Positions 10,881 to 64,000 of a stretch of DNA of 64,000 bases are shown in pieces. The DNA lies in NCBI GenBank assembly GCA_010909165.1, contig VJWM01000119.1:744001-808000 (forward strand), given 5' to 3'. The translations under genes and the position numbers were made by a program. How positions within the stretch are numbered: position 1 is the first letter of the stretch; each line of letters starts with the position of its first letter. Below the pieces are notes generated by a model that saw only the letters and a list, made by a program, of their open reading frames with translations, had not been told where the DNA came from and ran no database searches. This DNA is from Anthoceros angustus (lineage: Eukaryota; Plantae; Anthocerotophyta).

Positions 10881-10899
10881 ATGAAAGGCAGGAGTGCTT

Positions 10900-11470: not shown

Positions 11471-11599
11471 TAGAAGTTGCCTACGAAAGTCCAACTTCTG
11501 GCAAAAGACTTTTGTAGGCATCTCGTATGTCTATCATCAAGCCTTGGACAAATAAAATCTTGAACATGTAAGGTCTTTTTTTGGCGGTCACCTGAACAT

Positions 11600-12395
11600 C
11601 TGAAGTTGATGGAGGAGAGAGTTCCATGTGACTTTCGACAAAAACCTCTGCAAAAGCACATGACTTCGGGGGGAAAACCATAGCCTCCTGTAGCCTTCCT
11701 CCGCATCCACACATGCGGAAGAGATGGTTCCCCAGGTATGCATTCGACTCGTGCCTCCTTTACCCTTCCTCCACATCCACACATGCGCAAGAGATGGTTC
11801 CCCGTGTATGCATTCGACTCGTAACCACGTTTGACACATGTATGAACTGGTCGCCCCACAAACAGATCCTTCTTAGCTGCACATATGTTTTAGCGCATGT
11901 AAAACAGAAGCTGCGAAATAGGACAGTCTGTATGGAAGGAGAGGCACAGCGACCCATTTGCATATCCCAAGACCAACCTTCCAGAGGCACCGTGGCCTAT
12001 CTGCATATCTCACGAAACCAGCCTTCCAGAGGAACCGTGACCTATTTGCATATCCCAAGAAACCAGCCTTCGGGAGGCACCGTGACCTATTTGCATATCC
12101 TAAGAAACCACCCGTCCAGAGGCACCGTGACCTCTTTGCATATCCCAAGAAATGAGCCTTCCACCTATTTGCATATCCTAAGAAACCACCCGTCCAGAGG
12201 CACCGTGACCTATTTGCATATCCCAAAAAATGAGCCTTCCAGAGGCACCGTGACCTATTTGCATATCCCAGGAACCCAGCTGCTCATCAATCCGAAGGTT
12301 CGACCTGGCAGGAGAAGCACTGCAACCCACCTGCATATCCAAACCAGATACTCATCAACCCAAGCTGGTTTGCAGAGCAAGATCTCACCTACTTG
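11600..12395 (-). pseudogene. 5' relic of a cluster-type PPR gene with internal repeat expansions
   Basis: GYESNAYTGNHLLRMCGCGGR appears twice, with CAKTYVQLRRICL/AAKKDL-like sequence and the PAWVDE/DMQIGHGAS linker sequence. Confidence 0.75.
11940..12290. repeat. ~8-copy 45-bp minisatellite derived from the PPR linker
   Basis: Unit ccttccagaggcaccgtgacctatttgcatatcccaagaaacca starts recur at ~11998, 12043, 12088, 12133, 12166 (short), 12211 and 12256. Confidence 0.9.
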
Positions 12396-34600: not shown

Positions 34601-37600
34601 TAACTCTCGGTTGAGATCCCCACGCCTGGCTGGTTGGAGACGTCCGATTGACAGAGGTGGTGTGCGCGAGACGCCCTAGGGTGGTCGAGAGCTTGCTCCG
34701 CACTGGGAGGAGGGGTGATAAAGCAATCTGCCGACAAAGGAGGAGGAAACTGGGATTGGCGCGGGTCCGGAGCTTGCTCGTAACGCCTCACTGACGCCTG
34801 GGGTTCTTCTTTCCTTCACACTTGTCCTCGCTAGTTGTGTTCAAATTGAGAGAGAAGTGTTGAGTGGATGGTTGGAAGCTGTGAGCGATTGAGGGAGAGA
34901 GAGAGAGAGGGAGAAGATTGGGTGAAGGAGTGACTAAACAATCAGACGATGCGAGGTGTGAGAGGAGTTGAGAAGGGAACTAATTGAGAGGCAAAGGAGA
35001 TTTGTGTGAATCCAAAAGAAACCAAACCGGCACCGGTGGAAGGCACAAGGGGAACAGCTCCTTGTAAAATTGTGTGAGTGTGGCGCCTTTGTGTGTGTGT
35101 GGAGCGTGAGGATTTGTGGAATTTAGGTCCCTAGGAATCGGTGTGTGTGTGCATGAAGTGTGGAGTGCAGAATAAAGCGGATCCGCACACGGGTGACGCG
35201 GATCCGCGCGCCGCACCGGAAATAAGTCGCTAGGGTTTGGTGGGACCCACCCTGGTCAAGCAACTACCGAGAGGGTGAGAGCCACCGCGGCCGTGGAATA
35301 AGATTTGCGTCGTGGAATAAGAGCCGTAGCTAAGTCGGGGTAGTAGTGGTTGAGTAGATAGGTAAGAGGAGTAATAGCAAGTAAGTCTTGACTTAGGTGA
35401 AGGTCAAGAGCGATAGAAGAAGGCCTCGCACAAACCATTCCCTTGGGAGCGAATCCTAAGCCTACAACGACATTGAGGGCGAATGTGGACCTCACGGTGT
35501 CCCTGGACACAAATCCACACTCCACACCTACGCACTGTCCCTACCGAGGTAGGGAACAAGGTGGTAGGAAACAAGTAGGGGACAGAGATGCGGGTAGTAT
35601 GTAGGGTGACCAGGGTGGCCCTACATGGGTAGGATGTAGGGTAAGGGTGGACTCTACTACAGAACTAGGTAGGTAGGTAGATAGGTAGGTAGATGGGTGG
35701 GGTGAGTGTCTCCTCACTGTAGGGAGTGGTGAGGTCTCACCGTAGGGAGTGGCGAGGTCTCCCCACGAGGAAGTGGGCGACACCCTACTTGGATACTTGG
35801 GGGCGACACCTACTTGGATACTTGGGAAGCAAGTCAGACAGTGTTCAACCTAGGAAGTTGTTAAAAAGGGCTGTATATGCAAGGTTGAGGATAAATAGGG
35901 TATATTAGGAATAATAATCCATAAATATGTAAGGTGTAGTGTAGGGTGTTTATAACAAGTAGGGCTACTAAATCGAGGACGGTGGAAATAGTGCCACATG
36001 GCAAGGAATCAACGGCCTATATCAAGAGTTTTTGTCACTACCAAAGGGCCATGCAAGCGGTGTGTAGGGAGTGGCACCTAGGAAGCTGTGAGGAATCACA
36101 GGAAGAGCTTGTGCATGCAAGGGAAAGCTAGAGCAAGGACTTGGTGGGAACGCGGTGCCCATGTGTGTGCAAGGAGAAGGAGGTGTGCGTGCATAAGGAG
36201 TTGTGTGTGAAGGGATTTGAAGCACAACTGTGAAGAGGGCAACGGCGCTGAATTTTTGTGCCTAGGACCTTGCAAGTGAGGGATTTGGGCGCATAAGGAG
36301 CTGTATGTTGTGAGGACATCAAGTTTGAGCTAGGTGGGACTGTGGAGTGAAGAGGAAGTAAGTGGAAAAGGGCTGAAGTTGCTCTCTTGGTGGATCTTGT
36401 GTGGCGAGTGAAGAAATCTCGCAATTGTGTGTAGACACTGAGGTGACAACTAGGTGGAAACGAGCACGTGGGCGTGCCCAAGCTTGTCTTGTTTGTGCAG
36501 TTATTTTGAAGGTGCAAGATGGTGAAAGCGCCTGCACCTAAGAAGGGCAAGTTGGTTGCTAGGGAGCCAGGGAAGAGGTACAGATGCTTGAATTTAATTG
36601 CTTCCCTGCACAGGTGGAGGCTAGGCACTTGGTGGCATTCAGATGGTTTGCTGGACAGCCCAACACATCCGACAGGTATATGGAAGGCCGTAGAGGATGA
36701 CTCGGAGGAGGAAGAGGAAGGCATGGAGCAAGATCCGCTCACGGGAGACCTTCTTGCAGTGGAGAGCGTGGAGGCGGTAGGGCCATAAGAAGTTGACCCA
36801 CGTCCGTAGGAGGTGTAGAGGGTGGCCCTACATCCGTAGGATCACCGGCGCGGTGAGACGGAGGTAATTGAAGGGGTTGGTGGTAGCTTGGAGTGTGGGC
36901 TCATTGCTTGGGGAGACTTTCTTTAGAGGAGGCATTAATGCTTGTCAACCCGGTGGGGTGTGTTGACTAGCTAGATAGGAATGTTGACAGAGCCATTAAG
37001 GCTCACATAGGTGAAGTTGCTAGAATAGAATTTTACCCAAGATGCTTGGATGTCGAACTTAAAGTCGTAGGATACACTAAAATAAGGAGTGAGGCGTGGA
37101 GGCGCGCCGAGGGAGGTGTATGTTGTGAGGACCTCCCTATAAAAGGAGGGAGCTTGTGAAGTAAAATTATCACGTCTTGCGCTCCCAAACTCGCGAGTCC
37201 TTTGCTCCTTGTGAAGGAATTTCGTGCCGGCTGCAAGCTAACGCAGTGTCTGGTAGAGAGGGAGTTTGCGGTGGTCGGAGTGCTTGGCGGAGGGCTCGCT
37301 CCTTGCGGGCGCCTCTGCAGGTTGCTCCCCTTGTGAATGGTTGCTGTGAAATTGCTTTGCTTTGGGTGTGTGGCGATGCCCAAGGAACTCTCGGCTTGAG
37401 GGTAGACTACAGGGAAAGACTCCACAGGTTCATTGTCTGGTGCAAACTCATAGCAACCGCCCAAGGAAGAACTTGTTGGCTTGTGGCGGACCCAGGCGGT
37501 TGTCGTAAGGCGAGCTAGGGCTGAGCTTGAAGTAAGGTTAGATTAGGAGGATGAGGAGTTGAGTTGAGGTGAGTGTATGTTGAGGAGAATGTGGAGCTGA

Positions 37601-38200
37601 ATGTTGAGTAGAGGAGTAGGTAGAGATTAGAGTAAGAAGAAGGCCCAAGTCGAGCCTAAGGGAGGGTCCCAAATGCACCAAACCGAGACCGGAAGCCGGG
37701 CTAAGGTCTCAAAATCACGGGTGGAGAAGTCGCTACCGTAGGGGGTCCCTACGCGAGACGGTGGACCTACCGCCATAGGGTGGGACCCACGATCGTAGGA
37801 TGTCGTAGGTCCAGTGGAGTGATCCGAGCAAAGGCGGAGTGGCGTCTAGAGTTGGTGGTTGAGGGTGTGCCAATTGTGGGAAGGCGATGGGAAAGGAATA
37901 GTGGACGATCACGGGGTGGTGAAGTCGCTGCAACGTAGGGGGTCCGGCGTAGTCACGACTCACGCTGTGGGGTGTGGACCCATAGTCGAGGGTGTCGTTG
38001 TAGGTCTAGAAGCGGTGATTGACGAGCAGCATGGTGAGGCGTGGCTGTCTGTGGAGTGAGTTGAAGTTGCTCCACCGTGTGAGGGAGCTTGGGTGTGAAG
38101 AGGCGTGTGGTTTGTGCCTTGGATGTTGGTGACCGACAAACAAGAGTCTCATGGGACGAAACCTATTGTACTTAGCTTATAAAGTGATGGGTGTGGCCAC
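28640..38200. mobile_element. Unclassified repetitive/TE-derived region with purine-skewed blocks, CCCTAC/GTAGGG palindromes and a broken accessory ORF
   Basis: No host-like genes. 29743-30020 is homologous to 40801-41110. 80-bp tandem at 30036-30175. Broken plus-strand ORF 31.7-34.3 kb (HMDEETYVPGLYVNGERV...). No catalytic TE domain recognised. Confidence 0.5.
31867..34315. repeat. ~1.22 kb tandem duplication
   Basis: 31867-33078 is repeated as 33092-34315 with many small indels. Confidence 0.9.
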
Positions 38201-41254: not shown

Positions 41255-41525
41255 GTCATAGGGATACTCAAGACAGTCCTAGTGTAGGAGGATACTCAGA
41301 GCACTGACAGTCCCAACACAGCTCTATTTCACGTCGCACGACAGCTGTTATGAAAGACAAGCAGCTCAAGCTGGGACATACTCGGGACAGTCCCAACCTC
41401 AAACATACTCGAGATACTCCCAACCTCAGCCATACTCGGGACAGTCCCAGCAGTGAGTATACTTGGGATAGTCCCAACAAAGAACATACTCGGACGGTCC
41501 CACCACCTCGGCCATATACTGGATA
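41255..41525. repeat. CATACTCGG(G)ACAGTCCCA repeat array, copy 1
   Basis: Motif recurs ~7 times. Block 41272-41335 is homologous to 51335-51395. Confidence 0.75.
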
Positions 41526-43571: not shown

Positions 43572-45177
43572 TCACTTCGCGCGGCGCGCTATGCGTCGGC
43601 TTGACAACAGTTTCTTCTCGATTTCCTTTTCCAAAGGCGCTAGCCTTTTCTTCTTCCCTATCGGGTGCACCTGATCACCCACAACCATGGTACCTGAACC
43701 CTCCTGCACGTCATCAAACAAACCGGGATTCAGGAATGGGGGATGTGCCTGATTTGCCATCGACGAAAAAAGGTTGAGGAAGGATGTCCAAACGAAGGTG
43801 TAAAAGCACCTACCAAGGCTTGTTTCTTTGAGCTCCTGGTGATTCGCCTGCCAGATGCGGGTGTCCGTGGCTGAGTGGCAGGCACATACTCCATCTCCAT
43901 CAGCCTACGCAACTCTGAAGGCGTCTCCTCACCTCCTTCCATCATATGGTCATCGACTTCCGCAACTCTCCCGGTTTGGAGTGTCGCATTCCCATCGACA
44001 CCCTGAATCGATATCTTCGGTTCCCACACGCATCGGTGGATCGACTGCCCTCCTCCAAAGATCACCAACATGTCTGCCTCATCCACCACATCGCTAAGTC
44101 ATCATGGCAAATGGAAGACACTCTTGCGGGCAATCTTAAAGCACCAAATCATCATCACTCACCTCCAGACATTGGGAGCACCTTCCAAAATTCCTGCATG
44201 TCATCCATTGAATGAGCCAGCGCCCACTTTGTCTCATCTGTGCTTGGATACTTCCCCCACCGAAGCAGAAACCGCTTTCGGAACTCTGCAGCACCAATCC
44301 GCCCGTATGGATTTGTCCCCGCCTTACCATGCTTGGCCACTCGCACGGTATCTCACGACAGAGGCCATTTCCCCGCCACCTTCGTTGCCCACATGCCCAC
44401 CGCCTTCTTGCCAATCTTCCAATGTCACATCGGAAGGCTTCTTCCCCACTTCTTCCGCAATAGCTTTGCTCCTTTCTTAACCTTCTTAAGAATGGTGAAA
44501 TTCCTTTGCACCTGGCACTTGGAGAACCGGCTGTTGATGATGTCCACATTCGTAATAGCAGGAAACTGTGCCCGGATCCAGTCCACTAAATCAGTTCTGA
44601 GCTTGACAGAGTGCTTCGTCCATGACTTGAGAATCTTGAGCCTGGTGACACACAGCTCTTTTGTTCTCTTCTCGAACAATGACTTACTTCGGGCTTGCAC
44701 CCACCGGGGTCCACATCTCCTCGGCCCGAAGCCGATCTCCGAAACATGCTTGAATATCTCCATGATGCTTTGTTGTCCATGAGCCTTTATCAAACAACGA
44801 AACACATCAGAAATCGGATACGGTCGCAACATATCGCCCAGTGCGAGCAACTTCGGAGACAAGTCCATGACAGTCTTTCCAGTATTGTCCTTAACGCGTG
44901 TTTCCCACAAATTAGACATGGGCGCATCCTCCCTCTGTTTTGTGCAGGCCAGTGCATCGTCCTCCTCCGAGGGCATAAAATCGGACTCCCCATCGCTATC
45001 CTCACTCCCACAGTCATCCTCAGACATTGATTTATCCTCGGGAGGCACCCACGCCATAAGCCCGTCAAGCGTTTCCTCCCAGTTGTCCGGCATGCCGTCG
45101 GGCTCCACTCCCAGCTTCTCGGCTAAGGTGTTCCCACATGGAGAAGCCAAAGATAATATTGGGCACTGAAACTGCAA
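43572..45177 (-). mobile_element. CACTA TnpA/PTTA-like second gene (frameshifted)
   Basis: Co-oriented and downstream of Tnp2. Acidic N-terminus, W..HS..LR.DL..WI..QFP and KPSDVTLEDW segments reminiscent of TnpA-like proteins. Confidence 0.45.
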
Positions 45178-45578
45178 CTGTCGCCAACACAGCTGGAAAG
45201 ATGGCTGCGGTCGTAATTCGTGTTCGTCGCCTAGGCGGGAAAGGTGCAGCGTAAGAGAAGTCTGATAGTTTCTCGCCTCTTACGCTATGGCAGTGTACAA
45301 AAATCTTCACGACCAGGTTTGAATGAAATTGTACATGGGGCAGGGGCCCGGGCGTGAAGACGAACCTCTTCGCAACTGGTAAGGTGTCCAGCGCAACGGC
45401 CGATACCAGAGCCTGAACCTGCTGCACCGGCTTGGACGAAAAGGGGCGTATAGTATGGGCGGAGTTTGGGCGTAAAGCTGGGGAGAAGTCCACAATTGTG
45501 GGCACAGTTTTTTCAGTCTGCTCGACATTTCCAACATTGCCTTCCAATCACTCCGAGGTTTGCGAGTTCCTCCAACCA

Positions 45579-46415
45579 ATGGCGAGCGGTGTTGCGCGGT
45601 ACATGCACTCCATCCTCGTGGCTCCGACTTCTTCTGAGGAGGCGGGTGCCGGGTTCCACAGCGATTCGTCTTCGGACGGAGCATCGTGGAAACTGGCAAA
45701 GCGGAGGAGGGACATGGCAAATGAGCGGCCCATTGTGCAGCCCATCTGGCGGTGGGATCATGACCTGCTCACGACGGGGTGTGCGCACAAGCTGAGGAAA
45801 CGCTCAGACTCGGCCGCTTGGGTTGAAGGGCGAGGAGGTGGACGGCGAATGACGCAGCCTGGGTTGGTGGCTTGCACAAAGACTTCATCTCGGGCTTTGC
45901 AAGGATGATGCCTTGGCCATGTGGACCTCCATGCACCGATGATGGAGGTTCCAAGCTGGTGGGTGGCTGTCCACCCCCGGGAAGGACTCCCTATTCTGGA
46001 GCGTGCCAAGGACCTTGGAGGTTTTGTGGTTGACGTCATTGAGGAAATGCGGAGGACCCCGGGTGTGAACAACAAAGTGACAGTGGTGGAGGTTGGGACA
46101 CCAGCCAGCAAGCTAGTGTTCGTGCACAATCCGAATCGGGAACTGCCATTTGATATTATGGTGGTTGACTTGGAGCCTTTTTTCGGCGATGGTGCGCCAC
46201 CTCCAAACTGGGATACCACCTTCGCCTCGATGTGGAGTCGAGGTGGAGTTTGTGCGGTCTACGATATTCAGAATTTGCCTCCGAACTGGACACCAAAGAA
46301 CAAGAACCGCTTGAACCTGTACACTGGTCCAGAGGAGAGCTTGCGGAAAATCTTAAGTGTGCCATGCAAGGTCGGAGGCCACTTGTTGCTCATGAAGCGG
46401 AGGTTGACACGCTGA
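45579..46415 (+). CDS. Unknown antisense passenger ORF(s) inside the CACTA element
   Basis: Two consecutive ORFs (MASGVARY..., MDLHAPMM... 164 aa) with globular composition, between the Tnp2 and TnpA-like genes. Confidence 0.4.
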
Positions 46416-46719: not shown

Positions 46720-49700
46720 TCCTTGGAGGCCATTAGGAATGTCGACATCTCATAGAGATGCGTAAAACTGGATGTCTTGAGTGGACTGCTACCGCTTTTG
46801 TTCATCACCAGTTTCAAACATAATGTTAAACTGAGTTTCAAAGTTCACTTCTTGGCCAAAAGAGGGATTCAATCCCAAGTCATCTGATCACGATTACGTG
46901 TTCCACCCTAGCCGCCGTTGCACACACCATCGACAGCAACTTTCATGTCACAATTTTAAGTTTCCTACACTGTATTGGGCATATTGACACCCATCCGGCA
47001 ATGATTCCCACGCTGAAGGCGCGGGCGAGCATATGTACCAATGCCGCCGACCAGCTCGCCAATCTGGGTGCGCAAAAGCCTGTGTCACATGACTTGGGAA
47101 AGTAAATGGTCCGGTTCGGTGATCCCGGTGGTAACGGTGGGGACGGCGGTGTCAAACCATGAATCCGCATTCCGCAACCATAGACGGAGGGTTTTTACGT
47201 ATCGCACTCATACCAGTTGACATTGAGGACTATTGTGGTCACTGACCCATCGTCTGTGGTTGCTTCAAGGATGTCTTTTACCTGGCCAAAGAACTCCCTT
47301 TTCCCGCTGTCCATTTCGAAACATCCATAAACCCAGGAATCTTGAGTCGACCGGCGGCGTTTGTCCGCCTCCAGAGTGCGAAAGTGGTATCCTCGAGTCT
47401 CCAATCCGCGGAAAGAATCCAACGTCAAGCGTGGGCCAGCTGCGATCGCTCGAACATCCATGTAATTTGGCATGCGTCTCCAGCGACCCGCGGCCATTCC
47501 AGCCTGGAGCCATTGAAGGTAATTGATATCATGGTCACCCCTGTCAAACTCCTCTCGAATTGGAGACAATGCATCGGAATTGAGCACAAGATACCAATGT
47601 AACCGTTTTTGCTCATCAATAGTAAGGCTCACTACCTTGGCCTTCCCAATAGTCCTTTCTGCCGGGTGGTCAGGGGTTCTGTAATTAAATAGCTGGCCGT
47701 GTTCACGAGTGAAATCAGCAAGGTAATCTGCCAAGAAGAACAAGGTTTCCATTGCTAAGTAGCCGGTTGCCAAACTCCCTTCCGGTTTTGCCTTTTGCCG
47801 CACAGATTGTTTAAGCACCAGCATGTGCCTTTCGAGGATACATCCAATGACAATTCCACTCTGGATTCCACTTAAATTCGATGTATGATCATATGTTGCA
47901 TTGGGTTCCGAGAAAAGCAGCTTCTCTAGTTGGATCATGATATCAATAACTTAGCTTTCATAATGGGGATGTCACGGCCTGGCCTTCTTACATATCCATC
48001 GTAAAGGGCACTCAATTGGACCGGAGTACTGTGGAAGCGACATCGTAATGCAATGGGTAAGTAAAGCGCATTAAGAGATGCCGATGGCTCTTCATGCCTG
48101 TGACTTTGGACCCCCGAAAGCATGTGGACAAGTTGGCCCCAAATCCGGTCGGGGGTTTCATCCTGCAGATTTCAGCTTTTACTGCATCCACTCCCCTCGC
48201 AAGCAATATGACGCGCCAGGCAAGTGTGCCTCACCGTTGTCGTACACAAGCCATAACCATGGCTTAGAGTCTGCATCCTCAAGATCAACACGGGCACTAT
48301 GGGTGTCCCATTGACCAGACAAGACATTCCACAATGCCTGACAGTTGTTCAATTCAACATGCATAATATCCTTGAGCCATATTTTGTGAATTTGAAGGAG
48401 GTAATGCGGTAAGTGTTCAAAGAAAGTGGATTTATGCGCTTCCCCGACGGTAGCATGGGCGAGCGCTTCCACCTAAGCATTTCAAGCACTTGGTTGTATG
48501 AGCGGTGGCATGACACGGAGCTCCCTCTCATTGTTAAAGTACTCCCGATCAACAAGACGTCGGGGGTCTTGAAGGGAAGGGCACCATCGTCTGCCGTCAG
48601 CAGTTAGTTTGTCCGAGCATTGGACCACAGGCGATTCGACCGCATTCTATGCAAAGAATTGTACCCGAACTTGAAGCCCTAAAGGACCCCCGGACCGGGA
48701 TAGTCGCAAGAGGCATTGATAATTGCGTGGGTTGAAATAACGGTCCGCGCTACCGATGTCCTTGGAGTAGTCCACAGCAGGCACACCAACGAAGAGGGCA
48801 CCGAGCTCAGCCAACAATGGCTCCAAATAAGCGTCCGCGTAGGGACTTGCTTGGGCCCCGGAATGATGATGGGCATGAGTAAGTATTTCTTCATTGCCGA
48901 GACCGGTGACGGTTATGTATGACAAGGAGGACCGCCAAATGGAATAAGCAGTTCGGTGGTCGGATGGATTAAATCCATCTATGCATATACCAAGCCTTAT
49001 GTTTGATGTCGTTCCGAACCTAACTTCATCCAATGCACGCCATGCAGGGGTGTCAGCCATTATGCGCAGATGGCCATCCTCGCTTTTGTGTCTCGCAAAC
49101 CAGGTCAACTCCTTGGCCGTTTTTGGGCTGGTGAACATCCGTTGAAGACGTTCAGTGATAGGAAAATAGAAGAACGATTTTCGGGGGATGCCTTTCTTCG
49201 CGTTCTCGCCAGCTCGATAGCGGGCTTCCCCGCATTTTTGGCAATGCTTGTCCAAAGCGTGCGGCCCCCAGAAAATGCAGCAGTCACCAACACATGAATC
49301 AATTCGAGTGGATGTTTGCCCAAGTTGCATCATAGCGCGGCGAGCCTCTTGACGGCTGCTGGGCATACAATTGTTCTGTTTGGGAAGAAGGCCAGTGGAG
49401 AGAATCTCAAAATTGCGATCATCGGTCAAAATCTTAAACCGATCTTGAATGAATAGCAAGGACACGATGGCGGGACAGTGTGTGTGAGGTTTCGTTGAAC
49501 ACAATCCCACAGGGTGGTGGCAGCCATTGCGGTGACGGTTGTGGGGACAATCCGGGGAAAAGGCGTGCGTCTGCCGCATTCTCCATTCCGCCAACATTGG
49601 TGACAGCCTCATAGTCCGCGTCGAGTGCGAATCATCATATGCATCATAGGCGGATTACGCCGGTGTCGGACGTGCCCTCGGAGTCGCTGGATGGCATAGA

Positions 49701-51040: not shown

Positions 51041-51395
51041 TGTGACAGGGTAGGTGGGGCATACTTGGGACAGCCCTAGTCCCAACCATACTCGGGACGA
51101 TCACAGTGCAGTCACACTTAAGAGCCGATCAGTGCAGTCACACTTTCGGGACACTCCAGTCGGTCACACTCAGGACAGTCCCAGCCACAGGGATACTCGA
51201 TATAGTCCTAGGCCTAGCTCCAGCTACATCCAGGGCGGTCCAGTTCTTGTCGGCCATACTGTGGGCCGATCAAGTACCCATACTCGGGGCATCAAGTACC
51301 GTCACACTGGGGCGGTCCACGAGGATACTCGGGGCGGTCCTAATGTAGGAGAATACTCGGAAGCGATGTGATCCCAACACGGCTCTAATACCACG
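51041..51395. repeat. CATACTCGG repeat array, copy 2, ending in a tRNA-iMet PBS-like sequence on the minus strand
   Basis: Repeated (c/g)atactcgg. ggctctaatacca at 51381-51393 reads TGGTATTAGAGCC on the minus strand. Confidence 0.65.
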
Positions 51396-51645: not shown

Positions 51646-54600
51646 TCATCCAGAGAGTAATAGGCTAGCACAAGGATGCCATTGCCGACTTGGTCCATGT
51701 CCATCTTCTCGAAGAACAGAGTCCGCGCAATATCGGCGGATTCTTGAAAGCCTCTTTTGCGCTTTGGGCGGAGGTTGCCACCCCTTTCTCATATCATGCA
51801 AAACACGTGTTTTAAAGAGATGTCTTTGAATGGCGAGTTCCACTTAGAACAATGTAAGTAATATCGAGGTTTTTCCATGTATGCACACTTTTGTTTCTTG
51901 CGCGTCGTCCCTTCGAACTTACTGGGAAAGGCAGTGCCGGCACTATGGGTCCAAAACACGTAATATGCATTCAAATCAAAGTCGGGCATTTTCCACGAAG
52001 GGTCAAAAGCAATTATACGGTCAACGGACGAGCCCCTCATCTACAAGTCACAGCTACCCAAAGGGTCATCTACTTCAACCAAATTGAGCTCCGAATCGCA
52101 CCGTTTCTACATTTTCCAAATCCGCCTTTCCATGTCACCAAAGTCATCACCTTCAACTGCAAAGCGAACCTCATTGTCTGCGGTGGTAGTGTGCCGTTTT
52201 CATCCCATATTGTCAATGCCCTTGGTCTTCAACCGCCGGTCGTCACAGGGTGCGGAGTCCTTCATTCGACCCTTCTTTCCAAGCAAGCTATACACTTGCA
52301 TTTTCACATCAATGCCTCTCTGCAGATCTCCTTTGCCCAAAACTTGCAGGGCCCGCGAAAACTTATCTGTTATTTCTTGAACTCGTCCGGCGCGCCAACC
52401 CGTTCACTCGTTGTGACATATACATTGAGCATCGTGCGTCTTTGTCAATGGCCACAACGTTCCTTTTCCGTTGAATCCGGCCACCAAAATGATCCCGATC
52501 ACGCGGTCAACAATCCGATCGTCTTCGTTGGAGAACATGTTCACCAACATGCCTAATAAGCCCACGGGTTTACGATATGGCGTCGACCATCTTATCACCG
52601 ATGTGGTAAATCGCTTCTTCACCACAGTCCCATGTCGGATAACTCTTGGCAGCACCTGTTTGATGTCTTTGCCGGCAAAAAGAGGAGCTTTTCCGACATT
52701 GGACTCTGTCCTCACTGCGCTTCCCTTTGTCAAATATTCCACTGTTTCAACAGCACCACTGTTAGGTGGGATGTTGGTTTTCTCCCATACCAGGGTTTGT
52801 ATGACTCCTTTCCTGCACCAAGACCTCAAAGCCTCCCTGGCTTGAATCACCCCATCCACCCCATGCATAAGAATTATCCCACATCGCTCGTGGTCTTCTC
52901 GTTGAAAGAGCGATGATCTCTTTCAATTCTTCTTCAACGAAAGCCTTGTCATTCTCATGCAGTAAACCTCGAGGAGGTCGCGAGAAAAGAAGAGTATACC
53001 TCCTCGGTGGCAAAAATCCTTTCATATCCAAAATGTCTCGATGCACCACGATATGCCACTTTGTCCAAGACCAGCACTCTGGCTCACCGCATCCATGTCC
53101 TTGTCGGCCATTTGTTTTCGCTCTTCTTCCATCCGTTTCGATTCGCGCTATAAACAAAATCTTGGAAAGGTTTTGGCAGCTTTCAAATCCTCAATGTCTC
53201 CCGGTTTACGCAAGCAGACGGTGGTCGAAACAACTCATTGGCTGATGGAGCGCGGTCGGCGGCGCACGTGTGTCGCGTCGGCCACTCCTCTGACCGGCAG
53301 CGGCAAATGGCGGTCGCCACGGCCGGCCGGCGCCGGCCGCGTCGGCCGGCGCCGCGCAATCGCGCCGGCGCGCGCGCACCGCACTCTGGGCGCAAACAAG
53401 AAGGAGTCGCGGTCGGCGGCGCACTACCGATCGCACGGCGCGCCGAATACACTCACTTACCACTTTCAAAATTGTTTGAACTTCGCCAATTCCTTGGCCT
53501 CGGTATGTTTGAAGCTGTTTGGCGACTTCTGGCACACTTCATAGCCTTCGAAGGCATGCTCGATAAGGTTAATCTTCTTCTGTTGCCAACATCGTATCCA
53601 TATCTTTTAGCTGCGTTTCCTTGGATGACCTTCGGGTCACTATCAACATCTCTTCACCTTTCGTCCTTGGGACTCCTTGGAATGCTCTCCATGCCCTTAG
53701 AGCATTGGAGCCGGACGAGGGGTCGATTAGGCTGGCTGTTGTAGTTGGGTCTTGTGGCTTCCGTTTTGCTTGCCGCTTCGTCTCAGGCTGCTGTTCACCG
53801 CTGGGAGTTCGCACTTCTCCCACATGGAAAATGGTGTCCACGTTCTCCCACAATTTACGCACCTCGCAATCCTCAGCAGTCTTCCATCCACCATCTTCAT
53901 CATAATCGTCCTTGGAGTTTCCAGCCTCCTCCAGCATCCCCAGCAACTTGTACACATTGAACTTCCACTGCACAGTAGGTTTTCCATCGGGGTGTGTCCG
54001 GTGCCAAATCTCAAGCTCATCATGTATGTAGCGGACTTGTTCAATAAAACCAAGCTTCTTCCTCTTGTCTGCATACACATTGTGATCCACTGCCAGCACC
54101 CTCATTTCTTCCTCTGTCAAGCCTGCATATACATGGCCCTCGAGCCATTGAAATTTATCTTCCGCCGGATACATTTCAGACAGTGTCTGCATGGCGGCAT
54201 AGCAATGGTTCCCTCCCAGCACCCCTAGGGTGTAATCTTTGAGCTCGATCTCCTCCGGTGCATCTTCTTCTTCAAGCTTGTCTTTGGATCAATCATGCAC
54301 AAAAGTGGGAGCGTCCTTCCTTCACAGGACACATGCGCATCGCCGAACAAGGCACTTCATCCATGCCTCATCCACCTTCCTTATCGAGCATCTGCGTTAG
54401 AAATGAAGCGGGGCGTAGTACGAAAAATGTGAATGTCGAATGTTGTGGTTTGCACCCGCTTCTTGTAGGCCCGAGTGCGAACCATCTCCGATAGTCATCC
54501 TCCTGCGAAGGAGCTCCAGTCGTTCGGCATCATGGTGGCAACGCTTCCTCTTCGCATGCTTCCTCGACTTCCTTAATTTTTCCGCCTCGCCCACCTCTTC

Positions 54601-55141
54601 TCCATCACCAGAGATCTTGCCTTCCTCTTTCGCTTGATTGGTGTGCTCTGCATGGAAATCAAAACAAGATGCTTCAATTCTTACATGGGTTGAATTGCGG
54701 AGGCGAGCTTAGGAGCATTCTTACCAGCCATTCGCCTTCTCATCTTCACTTTGACAGGGAGCTGATTCCCTTCTTCTTCTTTCACTGCGGCTGCCCGCGA
54801 ATCCTCTTCGGACGAGGAGGGTCACCTCCTCCTCAAAAGCCTCAGTTCAAGACCCCGAGGCTGGACATGTTGCGAGCCATGGACAGCCTCGTCGAGCTCG
54901 CCTCCGCGCCGGACCACGAGGCGAGGCGCTCCTCCTCTTCCGGAGAGCTCGGCTCGGCAGGAACCTCGTCCTCCTCCATCTCCGGTTGCATAATCCGGGC
55001 ATCGTTTCGATGCACACACACCCACCGGCCCGCTGATAGGTGCGTGCGTGCCTCGCGCCCGATCACCGCGTCGATCACTACACCTCTGTTCTTCAGCACC
55101 TTCGCGTGGAGTAGAACGCAAAATTGTTCTCCCCTGTTCAT
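51646..55141 (-). pseudogene. ParB/Srx-like domain + beta-class N6-adenine/N4-cytosine DNA methyltransferase-like gene (multi-exon, frameshifted)
   Basis: RKVDEAWM..L and LGVLGGNHCYAAM...VYAGLTEEEMRVLAVDHN (ParB-like). HRDILDMKGFLPPRRYTLLFSRPPRG (motif IV position), QTLVWEKTN, YRKPVGLLGMLVNMFSNEDDRIVD, then a broken GSG.ILVAG and RNVVAIDKD (motifs X, I, II). Confidence 0.65.
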
Positions 55142-57143
55142 TTTAAAGAGGAAAACAATGAGTACCGACATGAAACCCTAATCGAAAATGGGAAGTGATA
55201 CATGACATACAAGACTTACATCTTGAACACTTTTGGAATCACGCAAGGCCGATTTCAACTGGCTGCTCACGACGAGGCATTATCTTGGCAGCATCCATTA
55301 TCGGGGAGATGTGTGTTGATGTCATCGTTTATGTGCAAATGAGGTTTCTTGGTGACCAAAAGCGTATGTGCATATCTTATTATTCGTCCTTGTTGCACAT
55401 AGAATCCATCCGACTCTTGCACAGGAATCCCCTCAATACCATTGTAACCGTTAATCCATAAGGCCTGGTGGAATCCAAGGCACTGGATCTTGGGTTCTTC
55501 TTGCAACAACGCTCCACTCTTGCATGTTGTACCGCCGGAAGAGAATCACGGAGCTTTTTCACCGAAAGCTCCACAAAGTTAAAAGCATGAGGAATCGCAT
55601 GTTGCATTTCCACCGAGGTTGGTGCTCCCTCGCGGCCATCAATGTCTTCATATCCTCTCCGTTGAGTACCCTTTGAGGTGGACGTCCGGACACTACCATG
55701 AGAGGATTCTCTCAATTGCATAATAGCGGTGGGGTTCTGTTACCACATTCGCGGGATCGCATCCCCTCATCCGTCGCGCCCTTGCGGCGATCCTGCTGCT
55801 CTTGCACCCGCTTCTTGTAGGCCAGTGCGAACCATCTCTCAGATAGTCATCCTCCTGCGAAAGCTCCTCGTTCGGCATCGTGGTATTTGTCAAGACAGCC
55901 TTCCTCTTCGCATGCTTCCTCGACTTCCTTAATTTTTCCGCCTCACCTCTTCTCCATCACCAGAGATCTTGCCTTCCTCTTTCGCTTGATTGGTGTGCTC
56001 TGCATGGAAATCAAAACAAGATGCTTCAATTCTTACATGGGTTGAATTGCGGAGGGCGGTTAGGCATTCTTACCAGCCATTCGCCTTCTCATCTTCTTGG
56101 TGACACAGGCAGTTGCGGATTCCCTTCTTCTTCTTTCTGCGCTGCCCGTCTCGGACGAGGAGGGTCACCTCCTCCTCAAAAGCCTCAGTTCAAGACCCCG
56201 GACATGTTGCGAGCCATGGCTCGAGCTCGCCTCCGCATCGGACCACGAGGCGGCGCTCCTCCTCTTCCGGAGAGCTCGGCTCGGCACAGCCGGAACCTCG
56301 TCCTCCTCCATCTCCGGTTGCATAATCCGGGCATCGTTTCGATGCACACCCCGGCCGCCTGATAGGCGCGTGCGCCGCCTCGCGCCCGATCACCGGTAGC
56401 GTCGATCACTACCTCTGTTCTTGACCTTCGGATAGCGTAGAAGCAGCAAAATTGTTCTCCCCTGTTCATTTTAAAGAAAACAATGAGTATACCATCGTGA
56501 AACCCTAAGCGAAAATGGGAAGTGATACATGGTGACATTCAACGACTTACATCTTGAACACTTTTGGAATCACGCAAGGCCGATTTCAACTGGCAGCTCG
56601 ACGAGGCATTATCTTGGCAGCATCCATTATCGGGAGGAGATGTGTGTTGATGTCATCGTTTATATGTGCAAATGAGGTTTCTTGGTGACCAAAAGCGTAT
56701 GTGCATATCTTCGCCCATTCAGTCCTTGTTGCACATAGAATCCATCCACTCTTGCACAGGAATCCCCTCAATACCATTGTAACCGTTAATCCATAAGGCC
56801 GATGGTGGAATCCAAGGCGGTGGATCTTGGGTTCTTCTTCGCAACAACGCTCCACTCTTTATGTGTTGTACCGCCGGAAGAGAATCACGGAGCTTTTTCA
56901 CCGCTGCTCCACAAAGTTAAAAGCATGAGGAATCGCGATGTGCATTTCCGAGGTTGGTGCTCCCTCGCGGCCATCAATGTCTTCATATCCTCTCCGTTGA
57001 GTACCCTTTGAGGTGGACGTCCGGACACTACCATGAGAGGATTCTCTCAATTGCATAATAGCGGGTGGGGTTCTGTTACCACATTCGCGGGATCGCATCC
57101 CCTCATCCGTGCAGCGCCCTTGCGGCGATCCTGCTGCTCTTGC
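54449..57143. repeat. ~1.35 kb tandem duplication
   Basis: 54449-55805 is repeated as 55802-57143. Junction on ttgc; indel-rich copies. Confidence 0.9.
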
Positions 57144-57382
57144 GGCCCGCACGCATTTTTTGCTTCGATGCGTGGCGGGCGCCTCCAACGCTGGGGTCGA
57201 TCTGCATGCTTATTGCTCCGTAGCGTCCTCGCGATCACCATCCTGCAATCTTCAAAAACCTCTGTGCGGGAAGTTGGCGGGAGGAAGTAAGAGAATTCGT
57301 ATCCGGACTCTCGAACTCTTGATGAAAAAGGAGAGGCTCGAGCTTCTGTGGAAATGAAATATGGATGTTTGAACTGCATCAA
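56586..57382 (-). pseudogene. Unknown broken ORF upstream of the ParB-MTase gene, probably element-borne
   Basis: MMQFKHPYF...EFSYFLPP...IPHAFNFVE...RPYGLTVTMVLRGFLCKS across shifting frames. No family recognised. Confidence 0.35.
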
Positions 57383-60300
57383 CGGGATTACGATAAAGCC
57401 TTAACACCTGCTAGTTACGCTAAAACGGCTCTGAAGTAGTAGCAACGGTAGGTTCACTGAACACGGTCATCATTCATTTAACCTCAAATGCCTAAAATAG
57501 GCCCATTACAAATTCCGATGCATCCACCTCAACTTATGCCATCATTTTCTAAAGCGGTGGCTGCACTCTCATTCAAGGTCCATCGGTCAATTCAATATCC
57601 TATTCCACTCCCATCATCGCACTTGCATTATGATAAATCATCAATTGTAAATCATCCAACACCACCGTACCACCTTATGTCACATGTCTATAATTGTGGG
57701 TGTGACTTTGATCTTGATTCAAAGTGCGGTTCTTCCTCGCATGCACAGCTCTTGAAAATTTGCCGATGTTGAAGCGGTGGAAGGAGTTCTTGAAGTCAAA
57801 GGACTTGGATGCTATCGGTCGGGCGAGCGAGATTCCTCCGATATGCAACACTCCACAGCATGCGTCGGTGGCGGGCGTCGCGCAAGCACTATTTGCATAT
57901 TGACATTCCATGGCTTGAGATGTGTATCATTTGAACTACGGCGCATCAAGGTTCTTGAAATGCCATATCAAGGTGTTCAAGATGAAGAGGAGAACTAGAT
58001 GAAGGTACGTCGTGCAAACTCGTGCGAAATCGATTGCATTCAAAGGCTCTTGTTAACATGATTCCGGATGTGTGTTATTCGTCTGCGGTGCACGGCCTCC
58101 ACCACTTCGCCGCGATAAGCGCATCCATTCCAAAGACACCCTGCTTTCAATATGTTGGATTCCATTCACGGAAGTCCTTCTCCGGAGACAGCCTCGCCGT
58201 ACATCCCGACCATCCGCAAGACTACTCCTCCGGAAGTGCTCCACGCAGCACGACACGCCCGTCGGATATGGCCGCTTGTTGGGGTGAATGCCAACTCGGT
58301 TTGCAGACCGGTTGTATCTAGAAGATACCTGTTTCCACCTGCTGTGGCCCCAGGACGTTCGGTGGAACCTGTTGTGGAGGAAGAGGACTCGGATGATGCA
58401 TTTGAACATCCACCTCCAAAGGCGTACATATAATTTGAAGCCGGGTCCGAATCATTTATCGAGCATGGCGAGACCACCACGTAGGCATACAGTAGGCAAT
58501 CTAAAGTGCACGAGATGAAATGTGAAGAGGTTCGTATTACCGTGATTTTCGCAAAACTGTTGTGGTAGACAATGCTTGAGGACAATAGGGAAGGCAACCT
58601 TTGAGATTTGAGGTATCGGTTCCTTAGAATGTGCGGGGGGCGGAGATGCACCTACAATCCCTTTTGATGTCGATTATGAGAGCGATGGAAGGGTTAGGGT
58701 AGACTCGTTTCTTGTCGGACGAGGAAAAGTGTATTGTTGTAGAGAGGCCTTGACGCGTTTATTGTATCGGGTCTGGCAGTGCGAAGAAGCAGCGAGAGCG
58801 ATCGGAAACATTGCGTGGTGCCCGCCTGCGTCGGCGACGAATCACATCAGACTCGTGGATGAACCAACTGTTTATGCTTATTGCCGAGAATGCCAAACAT
58901 TGAAGTGTATCACCTTCCGACTCTTACTCAAAAGGCGAGGTGTTTCAAGAATACAAGCAACATATGCGGCCTCAAGATCTGATGTTTCTCATTCCTACTT
59001 TTGTCGACTTTGGGCTACGCACACAAGGTGAAAATTCAAGAGCAATCGGTTTGCCTTGTGCACAACTGCGATTACCTCAAGCGAAATATAAAAGCGAGAA
59101 AAGCAGAGAAAAACAAGGTGAGGCTTGATGTGAAATTGTGTTTTGGCAATGGTGCGGTGGAGGTAGTGTGCGCTCGGTGGCGCCGTCGCGGTCGGCGCCT
59201 CGGCGATAAATAACGGCCTGGACGGCCGAGGCGTAGTTGTGAAGTCGCGGTCACGGCGCACAGATTTCGGTGTTCCTTCCAGGCGGCGGTTTATTCCTCA
59301 ACGTTGTTTGGGTGATTATTTTGCGAAGCATTTGAAGGCGATCGCGAGGCGCAAGTCCGAGAGAGAAAAATGCATCAAGCACCGCGTGAAATGTTATGGA
59401 GACCGGCAAAGTATATCGGGATATCCATCGACGGATGGACCAAGAAGACCGCTTCCACATTTCACGCGTTTACCCAAGGACTGTCGGATGTAGGTTTGAT
59501 CGGCGTCCATGTTGTGGGGTGCATGATTTATAACTACACCATGTCGGAACTCTTCATGGCATACGGAACATCCGAGCGATGCAAACGACTATAGCCAATA
59601 TCCGATGTCATTTCAAATTACGAGGACTACTACCAAAGGTTCTTTATCTTCAACTCGACAATCGCGGGAGAATAAGAATGCGCTATTCGCACGAATATGT
59701 TGGTAGAGCTTAAGGTTTTGAGAAGGTAAAAGTAGGATTCCTCCGGTTGGGCACACTCATGACCAGTTGACGGATGTTTTCGAGGTTTTCAAGTGCTTGC
59801 GAAGGAAGCTTTCGTTGCCCAAAGTGACGGTATTTTGGAGAATGCATATACGCCCAAACCAAAAATTATGGAGGTGAAAGAAGTTCCGGACTTAAAGTTT
59901 GTGTGGCCAATACCTTATGGTAAGGCTGGCTATAAACAGTTCTTTTGAAAACAGTTGCACAATATATCTTTTCGACATCAGTTCAAAATAACCCGAGAAA
60001 AGCGAGGTGAGCGGACTTATTCGTGATGAGGGGTAAACAATATTCCAGATGAATCTGGTCACCGGACGAGGGTTTGGAGTTTTGAATAATGTCCCATCTA
60101 CTCCTATTCAAGCTCGTTTGGTTCATTTGGAGGTCCAGTAAAAGCGGTTGCGGAGGGAGAGATCCCGAAGAAGTCTTGCACAATGCGTGGGAAACTAGAG
60201 GAAAACTCGGGACCCATTTGGGCGGTGAGGATATTTGGTGGGAGGAATTCAGGTGAGCAATCACCATCGTGGACAAGATAGCATGTGAGCATCTTGAGGA

Positions 60301-61663
60301 ATTGAAGACCCCTTGGCAGTAGTGCGATAGAACACATAATGAAGAGTTGCATCGCCTGGTTGTACAGGGTGAGATTTTACAGCATCAATCGTTCGCAAGT
60401 GCCCGGACATGTATGTTGGAGCGTACCGGCGGGATGATGCGCGGGAACAAGAAAGCTTGAGCGGCGATGTGTTGGAGATACAAAGCAGTCACATGATTGC
60501 GGTGCCTTGTGAGACAGATCCATTACGGCTCGCAAAAGTTCTGGTGGACTTCCAATGTGACGCCCATTCATTAAAGTCCATTGGTGGGTGACTAAATGCA
60601 CCGCATTTGAAGGCGGTACCTAGAGGAGATGATTTTACGATCACCACCAGCGCGGCTCGTGGTCGCTCTCAACGACGGAGCATGAGGTTGCGGAAACACG
60701 TCGACAAATTGCTTCTTTTCGGACACATTCATCTTGGCATACGGGTTTTCTCTAACAAAGCGAAGCAACTAAATGCAAGGACCCGAACCATAATACGGAA
60801 AAACATATACGTTTTGCGCTCTGTGCGAGGAGGAAGCTCGGAACATATGGAAGGAAGGGCGCTGCGGATGATGGCGTTGCGAGAAGATGTTGCATCGGGC
60901 GAGGACATTGAAACACTTGATGAACATGGTTCATGGAGTTGATTAGTTAGTTTTTGATTGACCATGGACTCCTACTAGTCTTTGGTGTGGGAAGGTATGT
61001 CGCCGGTGCGACTTCTCAGTGGATAGGTTGTGTGTTCCCCATGGACATAAGCGGCTTAACCAAGTGCAGTATGGGCACACAAAATGACGGTACAACAAAA
61101 TTTGCGATTATGTTCCAAATCGGCCAAAACCGTGTCTCTATTCGATGGACCTTATTTTTTAGGACAACACATGATAAGACCGGCTGTCGACAAATGTTCA
61201 AACGCATCCACGATTCGGTCCCACACTTTTTAAAGTTTTGGAGGAATGAATTCAAAGACAATAATTTTTTGGCCACGTTCTTTTCGGTCCTGTCGAAAAG
61301 TGGATGCCAAATTTCTTCAAAACCCGCAATAACGTACATGGTTTTCTGGGACATGCTTTTTTTTGGATATGATGATGGGAAAGTTTACTGCCTTTTGCCC
61401 AGCAGCCCATTTCAACGGAATCCGCCGATATTGCACAGACTCTGTTGAAGCATGAAGTGATTGTCTTGTTGTCAAGAAGTTTGGTCCTGAGAAAGAACAC
61501 GTAGATTTGCAAAAATGTTCCCGCAGGTTAATCACAAGAGATAGCACGATTACCTAAGTGCTACTACCAAAGTGCATGCATGCACACATACAGATTGCCT
61601 ACCCTTCCGCACGGAGATTTTACCATTCCCTCTTCGAAACGGGCCATCTCCGCAAGCCTAGAC

Positions 61664-61840
61664 TGTGAGATGTGAAGAACCTCTTATGGCAAGAAGGTTC
61701 GAGCATAACAAGAGCACGTGAAATGTAAATAAAACTTTTATGGCAAGAAGGTTGGATCATAACAAGAGGGTGTGAAATGTAAAGAAACCTCTTATGGTAA
61801 GAAGATTGGATCATAACAAGAGGGTGTGAAATGTAAAGGT
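61664..61840. repeat. ~54-bp tandem repeat, ~3.3 copies
   Basis: gtgaaatgtaaagaaacctcttatggcaagaaggttggatcataacaagaggg starts at ~61665, 61718, 61772 and 61826. Confidence 0.85.
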
Positions 61841-62863
61841 GGCCACTAAGATCTCAAGTGCCCATGACCAGAATCTAACTGCAAGCCTGTGAAATATATA
61901 TGTTGAAGTCGCTATCAAAGTAAGAGGGTTGGAAAAAAGCATGTGGAGAGGCTTGAAAATATAAACTCAAGTTTAAAATAATGTATTCTACCCAGAATCT
62001 ACATACGTTTATTCCAAATTGAGCAATTTGATTATAGCTTTGAGATGTTGTTCTGGAGTTAGGGCACGTTAGACTCCCTTGGGCGAGCTAGGGCATGTGA
62101 CTCCCTCGGGCAAGCTAGAAGAAGAAGAAGAAAAATTTTATTTAAGTCCACTAAGGACGAATTTCCGTCATGGGACTAGGGCACATTACACTCCCTCGGG
62201 CAAGCTATCTCGTATGTGAGACCATCCATTGTATTGGATTGATTAATCCTAAGATATCATAACTGAATAAATGATAAAATATCTGACCTTGATAAATCAC
62301 TTTAAAAAATAGAAAGATAATTCTTTAGAATATTTTATACAAATATACTTATAGTCACTTACAAAAGAATAAGTCAATTTATAAATATGCAAAGATGAGA
62401 AGTCCTATCTACACCAAGTCCCACTCAAAATGAGTTTTAAAATATCGAACTCAAATGCTATCTATATATGCAATGATCTCCATACCAGATAACTATCAAA
62501 TGAATTTTGTTTTGGGTTTTGAGGGCTTTCTTGATATCTTAATCAGGATTCATTACGAAGTTCTTGTGATATTTGGTTCAGCACGATTGTCAGGTTCTTG
62601 GTGATATTTTCGTCAGCATAATTGTTACGTTTGTGGGACAGGTTGTGATAGCTTGATCTGCTAGCAGCATTGTGATTTAGTTGCTGGAGAAAGCGTGGGT
62701 CGATCGGGCAAGGCTGCTAATGCGGTTGTCTAATAGTTATGTGAGAATGCTGAAAAAGATGGCAAGCGTGGGTTCCTGGATAATGATGATGCTGAAAAAG
62801 ATGGCTAGCGTGGGACGTTCTTGGATGGTGATGATGCTAAAAGAGAGGCCAAAATGCCATGGG

Positions 62864-64000
62864 ATGGATGGAGTGGATCCGGATCTGGAGGTAGAGCTGC
62901 CTCACGATGTTGTGGCCTCGATCCAGGCCCGGCTACCGTTGGTGAGCCTGCTGCGATCGCGCGCGGTGTGCAAATCCTGGAATGAGGCTCTGGCATCGCC
63001 GAGGTTGTTGAAGGAGCATCTAGAAGCCCGTGGAGGAGAGCAGGATTATATGTTGTGTGTAGTAGGAAGATGCGACTCCGACCCCATCTGTTGCATCTAT
63101 CATCCCTCATCCTGCACAGTCTTTTGCGGCTCACAGCTCTGAGGCCCAAATCCCACGATGGATGCGCCAGTCGCGGACCCGTGCGAGAATCGCGGATTTT
63201 GCCGGGGGAATTATGGATGCTGGCTGGTCCAAGGGGTCGGCGGCCGGCGGTGTGCTTGTGTCCGTGATGTACACGCTGCTATCAGGGGAGGGCTTGGTGG
63301 TCTCACTGTAGGCAGCAAAATTGGCTCTCTTGGGCACAGGTGCGGCCCTCCCAGCCGGCCTCGCGCTCCACCAGGTATTGGGCGTATTGATGGACGCCAC
63401 GGCGCACTCCTTCAAGCTTGTGGCAGTGGAGGAGAGGTGGGATATGGCTCCGCCTTGTCGTCGGACCTATGTCATGGACTCCGCGCTCGGGACATGGAGT
63501 GTCAACACAACCCGACTCCACGCCCCCAAGTTCGTCAACTTCATGGCCGGGCAGGGAGTGTTTATGGGCACCATGCTCTACTGCATTGCCACAAGGTGGT
63601 GCAATCTCTGCACCTACGACTTGGAGCAGGCCCAATGGGAATGGCTGCAAGTAGACATGCCTCCTGGCTTGGCCATGTTTGACACCAAACTTGTCCGCGT
63701 GCGGGATCGGTTGCTGTGTGTGACCCAGGATGGGGACCATGAGCAGCAACAACGCCCCGAGGGCTATTCGATTTTGCACATCTTGGAGCTGGATTTCGGG
63801 CGCATGTCCTGGACGGCGGTGGACGCCATGCCCGCTTCCATTGCCGCCGAATTCTGGAAGCCATGCATGAGTTCGTTCACTGGCAGGATCGGGCGGGAGG
63901 TTGTTAACCGCATCAAGGTCGTGGCGGGTCAAGCCTCTGAGGTGTACATCATGCATGACATGCTGGACAGGATCTTGGCTGTAGATTTGGGACACACGCC
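62864..64000 (+). CDS. F-box protein with a kelch/F-box-associated beta-propeller; frameshift near 63110 and in-frame TAG near 63310; runs off the window end
   Basis: ELPHDVVASIQARLPLVSLLRSRAVCKSWN F-box. The downstream frame gives SFKLVAV...YVMDSALGTW...GVFMGTMLY...TYDLEQAQW...MP...KLVRVRDRLLCV...ILELD...W..VDAMP. Confidence 0.8.

Follow-up and report, generated by a model that had tools for sequence, protein, structure and literature searches.

To what kind of mobile element, if any, does a broken gene for a bacterial-type DNA methyltransferase belong in a hornwort genome? The question is raised by a 64,000-nt stretch of Anthoceros angustus DNA (assembly GCA_010909165.1, contig VJWM01000119.1, positions 744,001 to 808,000 of the forward strand), the whole of which is called the window here. 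Its minus strand carries, at 52366-54396, one broken gene with a ParB/sulfiredoxin-like front and a beta-class DNA amino-methyltransferase back. The original prediction described a gene, borne by a transposon, that fuses a ParB-like domain to a bacterial-type amino-methyltransferase of the beta class, a description upheld by a fold model, by Pfam matches in relatives and by the profile of family alignment A3. It also named a large CACTA element as the carrier. The gene instead has its own 29-nt repeats bordered by GAAG, with a DUF7869 remnant inside them and the CACTA gene Tnp2 outside. The segment 51715-61446 is most probably a dead copy of a Sola-type cut-and-paste DNA transposon with two genes, of which the ParB-methyltransferase gene is the accessory one.

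The enclosing element and its gene pair

The element 51715-61446 measures 9.7 kb and holds the ParB-methyltransferase gene on the minus strand and a transposase remnant on the plus strand. Its ends and the remnant are laid out as follows.

51711-51714, no strand: left copy of the target-site duplication, GAAG, read from the sequence and identical to 61447-61450
51715-51743, plus strand: left terminal inverted repeat of 29 nt that opens with AACAGAG, 27/29 complementary to 61418-61446 (93%)
58612-59990, plus strand: remnant of a DUF7869-type DDD (three-aspartate) transposase in at least three frames, the core 59343-59990 found by tblastn and 58612-59342 by eye only
61418-61446, minus strand: right terminal inverted repeat, pairing with 51715-51743
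61447-61450, no strand: right copy of the target-site duplication, GAAG, identical to 51711-51714

The inner 17 nt of the terminal repeat occur at just two places in the window, the two ends of the element, where 0.08 matches are expected by chance. The aspartate motifs of the transposase remnant are IDGW (59430-59432), LDN (59657-59659) and GHTH..D (59773-59775), and the decayed plus-strand pieces also carry LYLQLDN and ENKN. These three motifs are invariant across the DUF7869 family; in the window their remnants fall in three frames, and their roles are presumably catalytic. A window transposase piece matches Pfam DUF7869 weakly (E 0.023). An 897-aa protein from the metagenome contig L006 matches 59343-59990 at E 5e-8 (tblastn), and window transposase pieces match L006 and a second metagenome contig, L008, down to E 3e-7. 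A 92-aa transposase piece used as a protein query finds no useful relatives, and language-model features of 60592-60939 are likewise uninformative.

The same two genes stand together in other genomes. In both L006 and L008, the 897-aa open reading frame (ORF) lies head-to-head with a ParB-methyltransferase gene, and the L006 protein matches Pfam DUF7869 at 1.7e-52. Inverted repeats of 37 nt (97%) surround both L006 genes over 7.6 kb, and a 20-nt palindrome lies between the two. In Riccia sorocarpa (locus L028, CM100794.1), an 856-aa N6_N4_Mtase gene with a ParB-like front is head-to-head with a 1076-aa DUF7869 gene, and a perfect 21-nt inverted repeat spans the pair, its copies 11 kb apart. 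Locus L029 holds a head-to-head pair as in Riccia. Tnp2 is not part of this two-gene design in L006, L028 or L029. The anticipated co-occurrence of the methyltransferase gene with Tnp2 inside shared repeats is thus not what relatives display, since they pair the gene with DUF7869 instead. Because the window repeats enclose both genes and the same pair occurs in L006, L028 and L029, the window unit reads as another copy of this two-gene family. Like its relatives, it once had two divergent genes, the transposase on the plus strand and the accessory gene on the minus strand.

The gene pair bears directly on a reading in which the methyltransferase gene has nothing to do with the transposase, being either a host gene in decay or a gene fragment that was captured, and in which the inverted repeats come from something else. 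Such an origin would suit two Chara braunii loci (L001 and L003), which have the gene with no transposase detected in their readable flanks, but those flanks are largely N. The head-to-head pair recurs in L006, L008, L028 and L029, in two of them between inverted repeats, and a 27/29 inverted repeat around exactly both genes is very unlikely to arise by chance. A host-gene origin is therefore improbable.

Assignment of the two-gene element to the Sola superfamily fits because its transposase is apparently of the DDD type and its duplication is 4 bp long, the two features by which Sola is defined (PMC10741241). The element also shares with that superfamily, by way of its transposase family, a D-D-D signature and, in itself, a repeat length within 11-1124 bp and a size within 2-15 kb (PMC10741241), with the difference that Pfam labels the window-type transposase core DUF7869 only.

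The ends of the element can be read in another way. If the repeats began at CAGAG (51717, 61444), the flanks would hold a decayed 8-bp duplication, TCGAAGAA versus TTGAAGCA, matching at 6/8 bases, and the unit would be a hAT element. A CAGAG start resembles those of hobo and Hermes, which speaks for this reading. Language-model features of 59316-59591 likewise lie nearest ZBED1_RNase-like, DUF659 and hAT clusters at 0.90-0.91, a score also reached by 4-10% of shuffled proteins. However, that very piece is homologous to the DUF7869 protein, whose family has the D-D-D signature. No window piece matches the Pfam hAT dimerisation or DUF659 domains, the L006 897-aa protein has no Pfam hAT match either, and the 8-bp duplication requires two mutations where the 4-bp duplication requires none. 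In view of the DUF7869 homology seen through L006, the hAT assignment is judged very improbable.

Several observations weigh against the Sola-type reading itself. The window transposase similarity is modest, at 26% identity over about 650 bp, and the remainder of 57.1-61.4 kb is without a detectable match. The 4-bp duplication is seen once only, because the L006 repeats end without a target duplication and the left end of the Riccia element abuts a run of N. The Sola name rests on the DDD signature, the 4 bp and one paper (PMC12477816), and the features of one transposase piece described above pointed to hAT-type RNase H folds. Finally, neither repeated palindromes, which would be candidate sites for the ParB-type domain, nor internal copies of the terminal repeat were found in the window element.

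Relatives of the L006 transposase number about a hundred and come from Ceratopteris, Adiantum, Chara, sea urchins and bivalves and, with many genes, from Riccia sorocarpa; the motifs IDGMDQ, LDN..ENKN and GHTH..D..FS show no variation among them, in plants and sea urchins alike (DUF7869 alignment A6). The sea urchin and bivalve occurrences are included in the relatives P0110, P0112, P0118 and P0125. In the intact L006 transposase (510-3200, minus strand), the last ~200 residues form a conserved tail past the catalytic core (PFWI.K...V.WY...GKY in A6). This tail has no Pfam match and may be a reader-type domain. In one Adiantum nelumboides model (P0103), DUF7869 is fused to an integrase core (rve, PF00665), either through a nested insertion or as a merged model.

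Two features of the Riccia locus are recorded alongside. At no fewer than eight places in L028 4300-12151 (near one end, in both genes and between the genes) there is a 20-nt, CTGTATGCGCGCATACAG-type palindrome, to which the ParB-fold domain may bind. The gene models flanking the Riccia element (L028 1-3804 and 24013-24286) carry the same Ion_trans and EF-hand domains and represent either paralogues in tandem or a single channel gene that the insertion has split.

The ParB-methyltransferase gene and its family

The pieces of the broken gene were each searched separately. They are listed here from the front of the gene to its back, followed by the duplication upstream.

53932-54396, minus strand: ParB/sulfiredoxin-like domain, placed by phmmer relatives and tblastn, and interrupted by two in-frame stops (54322-54324, 54289-54291)
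53572-54288, minus strand: stop-free stretch of 239 aa, which starts VLGGNHC..VYAGLTEEEMRVLAVDHN and holds VLGGNH..VYAGLTEEE..LAVDHN
53469-53931, minus strand: helical middle region (WRAFQGV etc.), placed by tblastn and family alignment A1, with one frameshift near 53572-53606
53148-53459, minus strand: probable intron with a GTAAGT start and a pyrimidine run plus AG at its end, GC-rich with palindromes, its ends read by eye
52867-53067, minus strand: methyltransferase N-terminal piece, with YTLLFSRPPRG at about 52966-52995 and motif IV, SRPPRG, at 52966-52983
52407-52898, minus strand: methyltransferase middle piece, with LVWEKTN, PYRKPVGLL, SNEDDRIVD and a degenerate motif I, colinear with the family in A3
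52366-52473, minus strand: C-terminal methyltransferase piece (RNVVAIDKD..) lying beyond a frameshift, with a stop codon at 52363-52365, aligning with the family motif RN..VE.D in A3
54544-57110, no strand: tandem duplication of two units of about 1335 bp, its blocks 90-100% alike at a spacing of 1327-1356

The motifs quoted in the original prediction are present on the minus strand where it placed them, RNVVAIDKD in another frame and GSG in a third. Both in-frame stops (54322-54324 and 54289-54291) fall within the part alignable to relatives by tblastn: the alignments of P0002 and P0010 cross the two stops, to 54381 and 54393, and those of P0001, P0027, P0005, P0006, P0007 and P0014 extend to 53587-53617. 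The frame changes at least four times, near 53572-53606, 53025-53060, 52870-52900 and 52470-52480. In frame, motif I reads DRVIGIILVAG, with GSG found solely in the third frame beside a stop, and the SRPPRG of motif IV is without both the aspartate and the tyrosine. Judged from its sequence, the window copy of the gene is dead and has no function of its own, because of these two stops, the frame changes, the degenerate motif I and the loss of both residues from motif IV. This copy is incapable of targeting or marking DNA.

The segment 53148-53459 is probably an intron of the methyltransferase gene, and the related loci L006, L007 and L012 likewise have several exons. Largely within this probable intron, 53200-53460 is very GC-rich, with overlapping GCCGGC-type palindromes at a 10-nt period. 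The 1335-bp tandem unit upstream of the gene has no coding match. Since its blocks are 90-100% alike, the duplication looks younger than the decay of the element.

The 239-aa front piece has 26 relatives in an exhaustive phmmer search of 1.84 billion representative proteins (best E 3e-21), a resemblance that is no accident, and none of these 26 matches of the front domain is a prokaryotic protein. Named matches come from Chara braunii, the fern Adiantum nelumboides and Ginkgo biloba, the last with at least seven paralogues, and are annotated as hypothetical proteins; the remainder come from Logan contigs. A degenerate-pattern scan finds 23 loci with the ParB core in metagenome contigs. No metagenome relatives were found for the Chara protein P0016. 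Intact proteins of the family are about 550-900 aa long and share one architecture across alignment A1, in which the front domain leads through a helical middle to the methyltransferase domain. The pieces in the window are colinear with this architecture (tblastn and A3). Recurrent motifs mark each part in A1: RP.D..HV.., GGNHS..AR, VYAGLT.EE and LA.DHN in the front domain; VWDL..IF, DM..PWR..QGI and SLEEM..EF in the helical middle; and Y(T/S)L.I.D.P.G, IW.KPN, PYQKP, VLD.FSGSGT and RN..VE.D in the methyltransferase domain. Within 36 kb of Chara locus L003 the gene is present three times (10334-12025, 36193-38097 and 44460-46226), each time as a diverged copy or fragment free of introns, and two of the three are fused in one 1825-aa gene model, GBG86584.

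Structural modelling indicates that the front domain has the ParB/sulfiredoxin fold. The AlphaFold model is of residues 20-170 of the relative P0005 with 23 aligned sequences (A2), the window piece included, rather than of the window protein alone, and its mean pLDDT (predicted local distance difference test) is 85. A Foldseek search with this model lists nothing but ParB, Noc, KorB, PadC and sulfiredoxin in its first 29 rows, with weak E-values (best 4e-3). VIA-align superposes the model on Myxococcus xanthus ParB (7bnk) with Z 8.7 and a root-mean-square deviation of 2.3 A over 86 residues; its top 28 rows all belong to the ParB/sulfiredoxin superfamily, and the next row falls to Z 2.1. Sequence profiles give no match to ParB. 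Neither the window piece nor any of 23 family members matches Pfam ParBc, the best match being DUF6551 (E 0.0017, in four members), and the front-domain family profile finds nothing below E 1.8 in PDB. Where ParB has its arginine-rich nucleotide motif GERRxR, and sulfiredoxin (Srx) has GCHR, family members show GG(N/T/G)H(S/C/G/T) and then A(R/K); GGNHTR occurs in three members only, and the window has GGNHC.

The back domain is, by sequence comparison, a beta-class DNA amino-methyltransferase. Of the two Pfam matches foreseen in the original prediction, ParBc did not appear, and N6_N4_Mtase holds for intact relatives, such as Ginkgo P0014 (7.6e-18, 65.7 bits) and Adiantum P0018 (1e-10, 42.3 bits), but not for the window, whose middle piece stays below the cut-off of 26.7 bits (E 0.022, 15.1 bits). 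A Chara ORF reaches 29.8 bits against the same cut-off. The front part of the window gene has no Pfam match, and its pieces taken singly find nothing in PDB sequence searches; Ginkgo P0014 matches the middle piece 52407-52898 at E 2e-4 (tblastn), and the C-terminal piece 52366-52473 also matches L002, the nearest relative (tblastx). Against PDB, the family profile A3 retrieves CcrM (3e-11), M.MboIIA (8e-11), a DpnA-like enzyme (8e-11) and M.RsrI (2e-10), whereas N4-cytosine enzymes match it more weakly (4e-4 to 6e-3). Motif IV precedes motif I, the beta permutation, in the window pieces as placed along the family in A3.

Motif IV had been expected to read DPPY or SPPY in other copies, and it reads neither. 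It is DIPYGF in 10 intact copies (Riccia and environmental contigs), where the D and Y are kept and the form is not (D/S)PP(Y/F/W), and it is DLPRGL in L002. The proposal that the window motif is an ADPP with lost homopolymer bases also gives way, since the DLPRG of the nearest relative means that PRG was inherited within the subfamily. Because motif IV has aspartate rather than serine and the adenine enzymes are the better match, an N6-methyladenine (6mA) type of activity is more likely in intact members than an N4-methylcytosine (4mC) type.

Related systems and a possible role

The element design is already on record for a brown alga, and green and red algae have related proteins; what seems to be new are the streptophyte members. 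The 21.5-kb Ectocarpus element Sola1-1_Ec32 has, opposite its transposase, a gene that combines a ParB-like part with a DNA methyltransferase, and its authors propose that the accessory protein binds and marks its own element (Genome Biol 2025, PMC12477816). It resembles the present family, by description, in being a DNA transposon with an accessory ParB-methyltransferase gene on the strand opposite the transposase. It differs in its brown-algal host, its 21.5-kb length and its 1104-aa protein, as against streptophyte hosts, a 9.7-kb window element and proteins of about 550-900 aa. In the red alga Bostrychia, the Plavaka accessory genes PAG2 and PAG3 encode a ParB-like domain or an N6-adenine methylase domain (10.1101/2025.02.11.637652). 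These too are transposon accessory proteins, and inverted-repeat arrays adjoin the ParB gene (10.1101/2025.02.11.637652), but the ParB domain is fused to a 2-oxoglutarate (2OG) oxygenase, the methylase to a SET domain, and the elements are Plavaka/KDZ rather than Sola.

Among prokaryotes and phages, ParB-methyltransferase fusions and ParB-Tls loci likewise join or link a ParB fold to an amino-methyltransferase on a mobile element (Iyer et al., PMC4738411). What sets the eukaryotic family apart is its introns, its long stretch of helical middle region, GGNH(S/C) instead of the arginine-rich ParB motif, and DIPY for DPPY. A Dam-type family with a helix-turn-helix of the ParB type occurs in chlorophytes and chytrids (Iyer et al. 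2016). CcrM, M.MboIIA, M.RsrI and the DpnA-like M1.HpyAVI share with the family the placing of motif IV before motif I, a motif of the PxQKP type, and F.GSGT with R/N..(G/A/S).(E/D) after it; the family differs from such enzymes in its ParB-fold fusion and in motif IV, for which intact relatives have DIPYGF and the window SRPPRG. DN4MT1 of Marchantia and N4CMT of bdelloid rotifers are likewise bacterial-type amino-methyltransferases in eukaryotic genomes. DN4MT1, however, has TSPPY where the ParB-methyltransferase family has D, and N4-cytosine enzymes are far weaker against the family profile.

A literature search brought up no description of such elements from land plants or from Chara, nor any paper that mentions DUF7869. 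The present analysis adds the spread of the package across Chara, a liverwort, ferns, Ginkgo and the hornwort Anthoceros angustus, and its tie to a DUF7869 transposase family that is also present in sea urchins and bivalves. A transposon with its own DNA-marking enzyme bears on the interplay between mobile elements and host silencing, and on the origin of eukaryotic 6mA and 4mC writers.

Three parts make up the accessory product of an intact element, namely the ParB/sulfiredoxin-fold domain, the helical middle and the beta-class DNA amino-methyltransferase. The ParB-type domain would bring the methyltransferase to the element's own DNA, and the enzyme would then mark that DNA, more likely with N6-methyladenine than with N4-methylcytosine. 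Self-marking, control of transposition and escape from silencing are candidate purposes of such a mark. A more elaborate scheme, put forward tentatively and thought rather unlikely, is that in intact Riccia and fern members the ParB-fold domain loads on the element's own palindromes, that N6-methyladenine serves as a private mark unread by 5-methylcytosine silencing, and that stranded gene copies are kept by the host.

The CACTA neighbour and the right flank

The broken gene is co-oriented with Tnp2, as originally predicted, at a spacing of about 1.8 kb. The neighbouring CACTA genes are a Tnp2 (Transposase_21, E 1.6e-8, 48647-49612) and a DUF4218 gene (47195-47938), both downstream of the methyltransferase gene on the same strand. 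CACTA-like 27-nt repeats of the ATACTCGGGAC type, probably CACTA subterminal repeats, form clusters at 41367-41501 and 51050-51335, which share their orientation, are 10 kb apart and flank Tnp2/DUF4218.

This proximity, and the extension of the subterminal repeats to about 51.34 kb, favour a reading in which the methyltransferase gene is cargo of the large CACTA element; so does the circumstance that the CACTA ends are not fixed, which would let a Sola-type insertion be nested in a longer CACTA element. The subterminal motif is, however, absent beyond 51.34 kb save for one off-by-one match at 60203, and no pair of CACTA termini with a 3-bp duplication was found in the window around the gene and Tnp2. 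The gene also has its own inverted repeats and duplication, shared with a different transposase and leaving Tnp2 outside, and relatives pair it with DUF7869, never with Tnp2. That the gene travelled as CACTA cargo is hardly credible, and the CACTA element next to it is best taken as an insertion in its own right. The Sola-type insertion may lie next to the CACTA element or be nested in its edge; whether adjoining or nested, the inner Sola-type element is the one to which the methyltransferase gene belongs.

On the other side, just beyond the right end of the Sola-type element, a 54-nt tandem repeat (3.3 copies) occupies 61664-61838, and an F-box ORF (F-box-like, E 4e-7) follows at 62681-63142.

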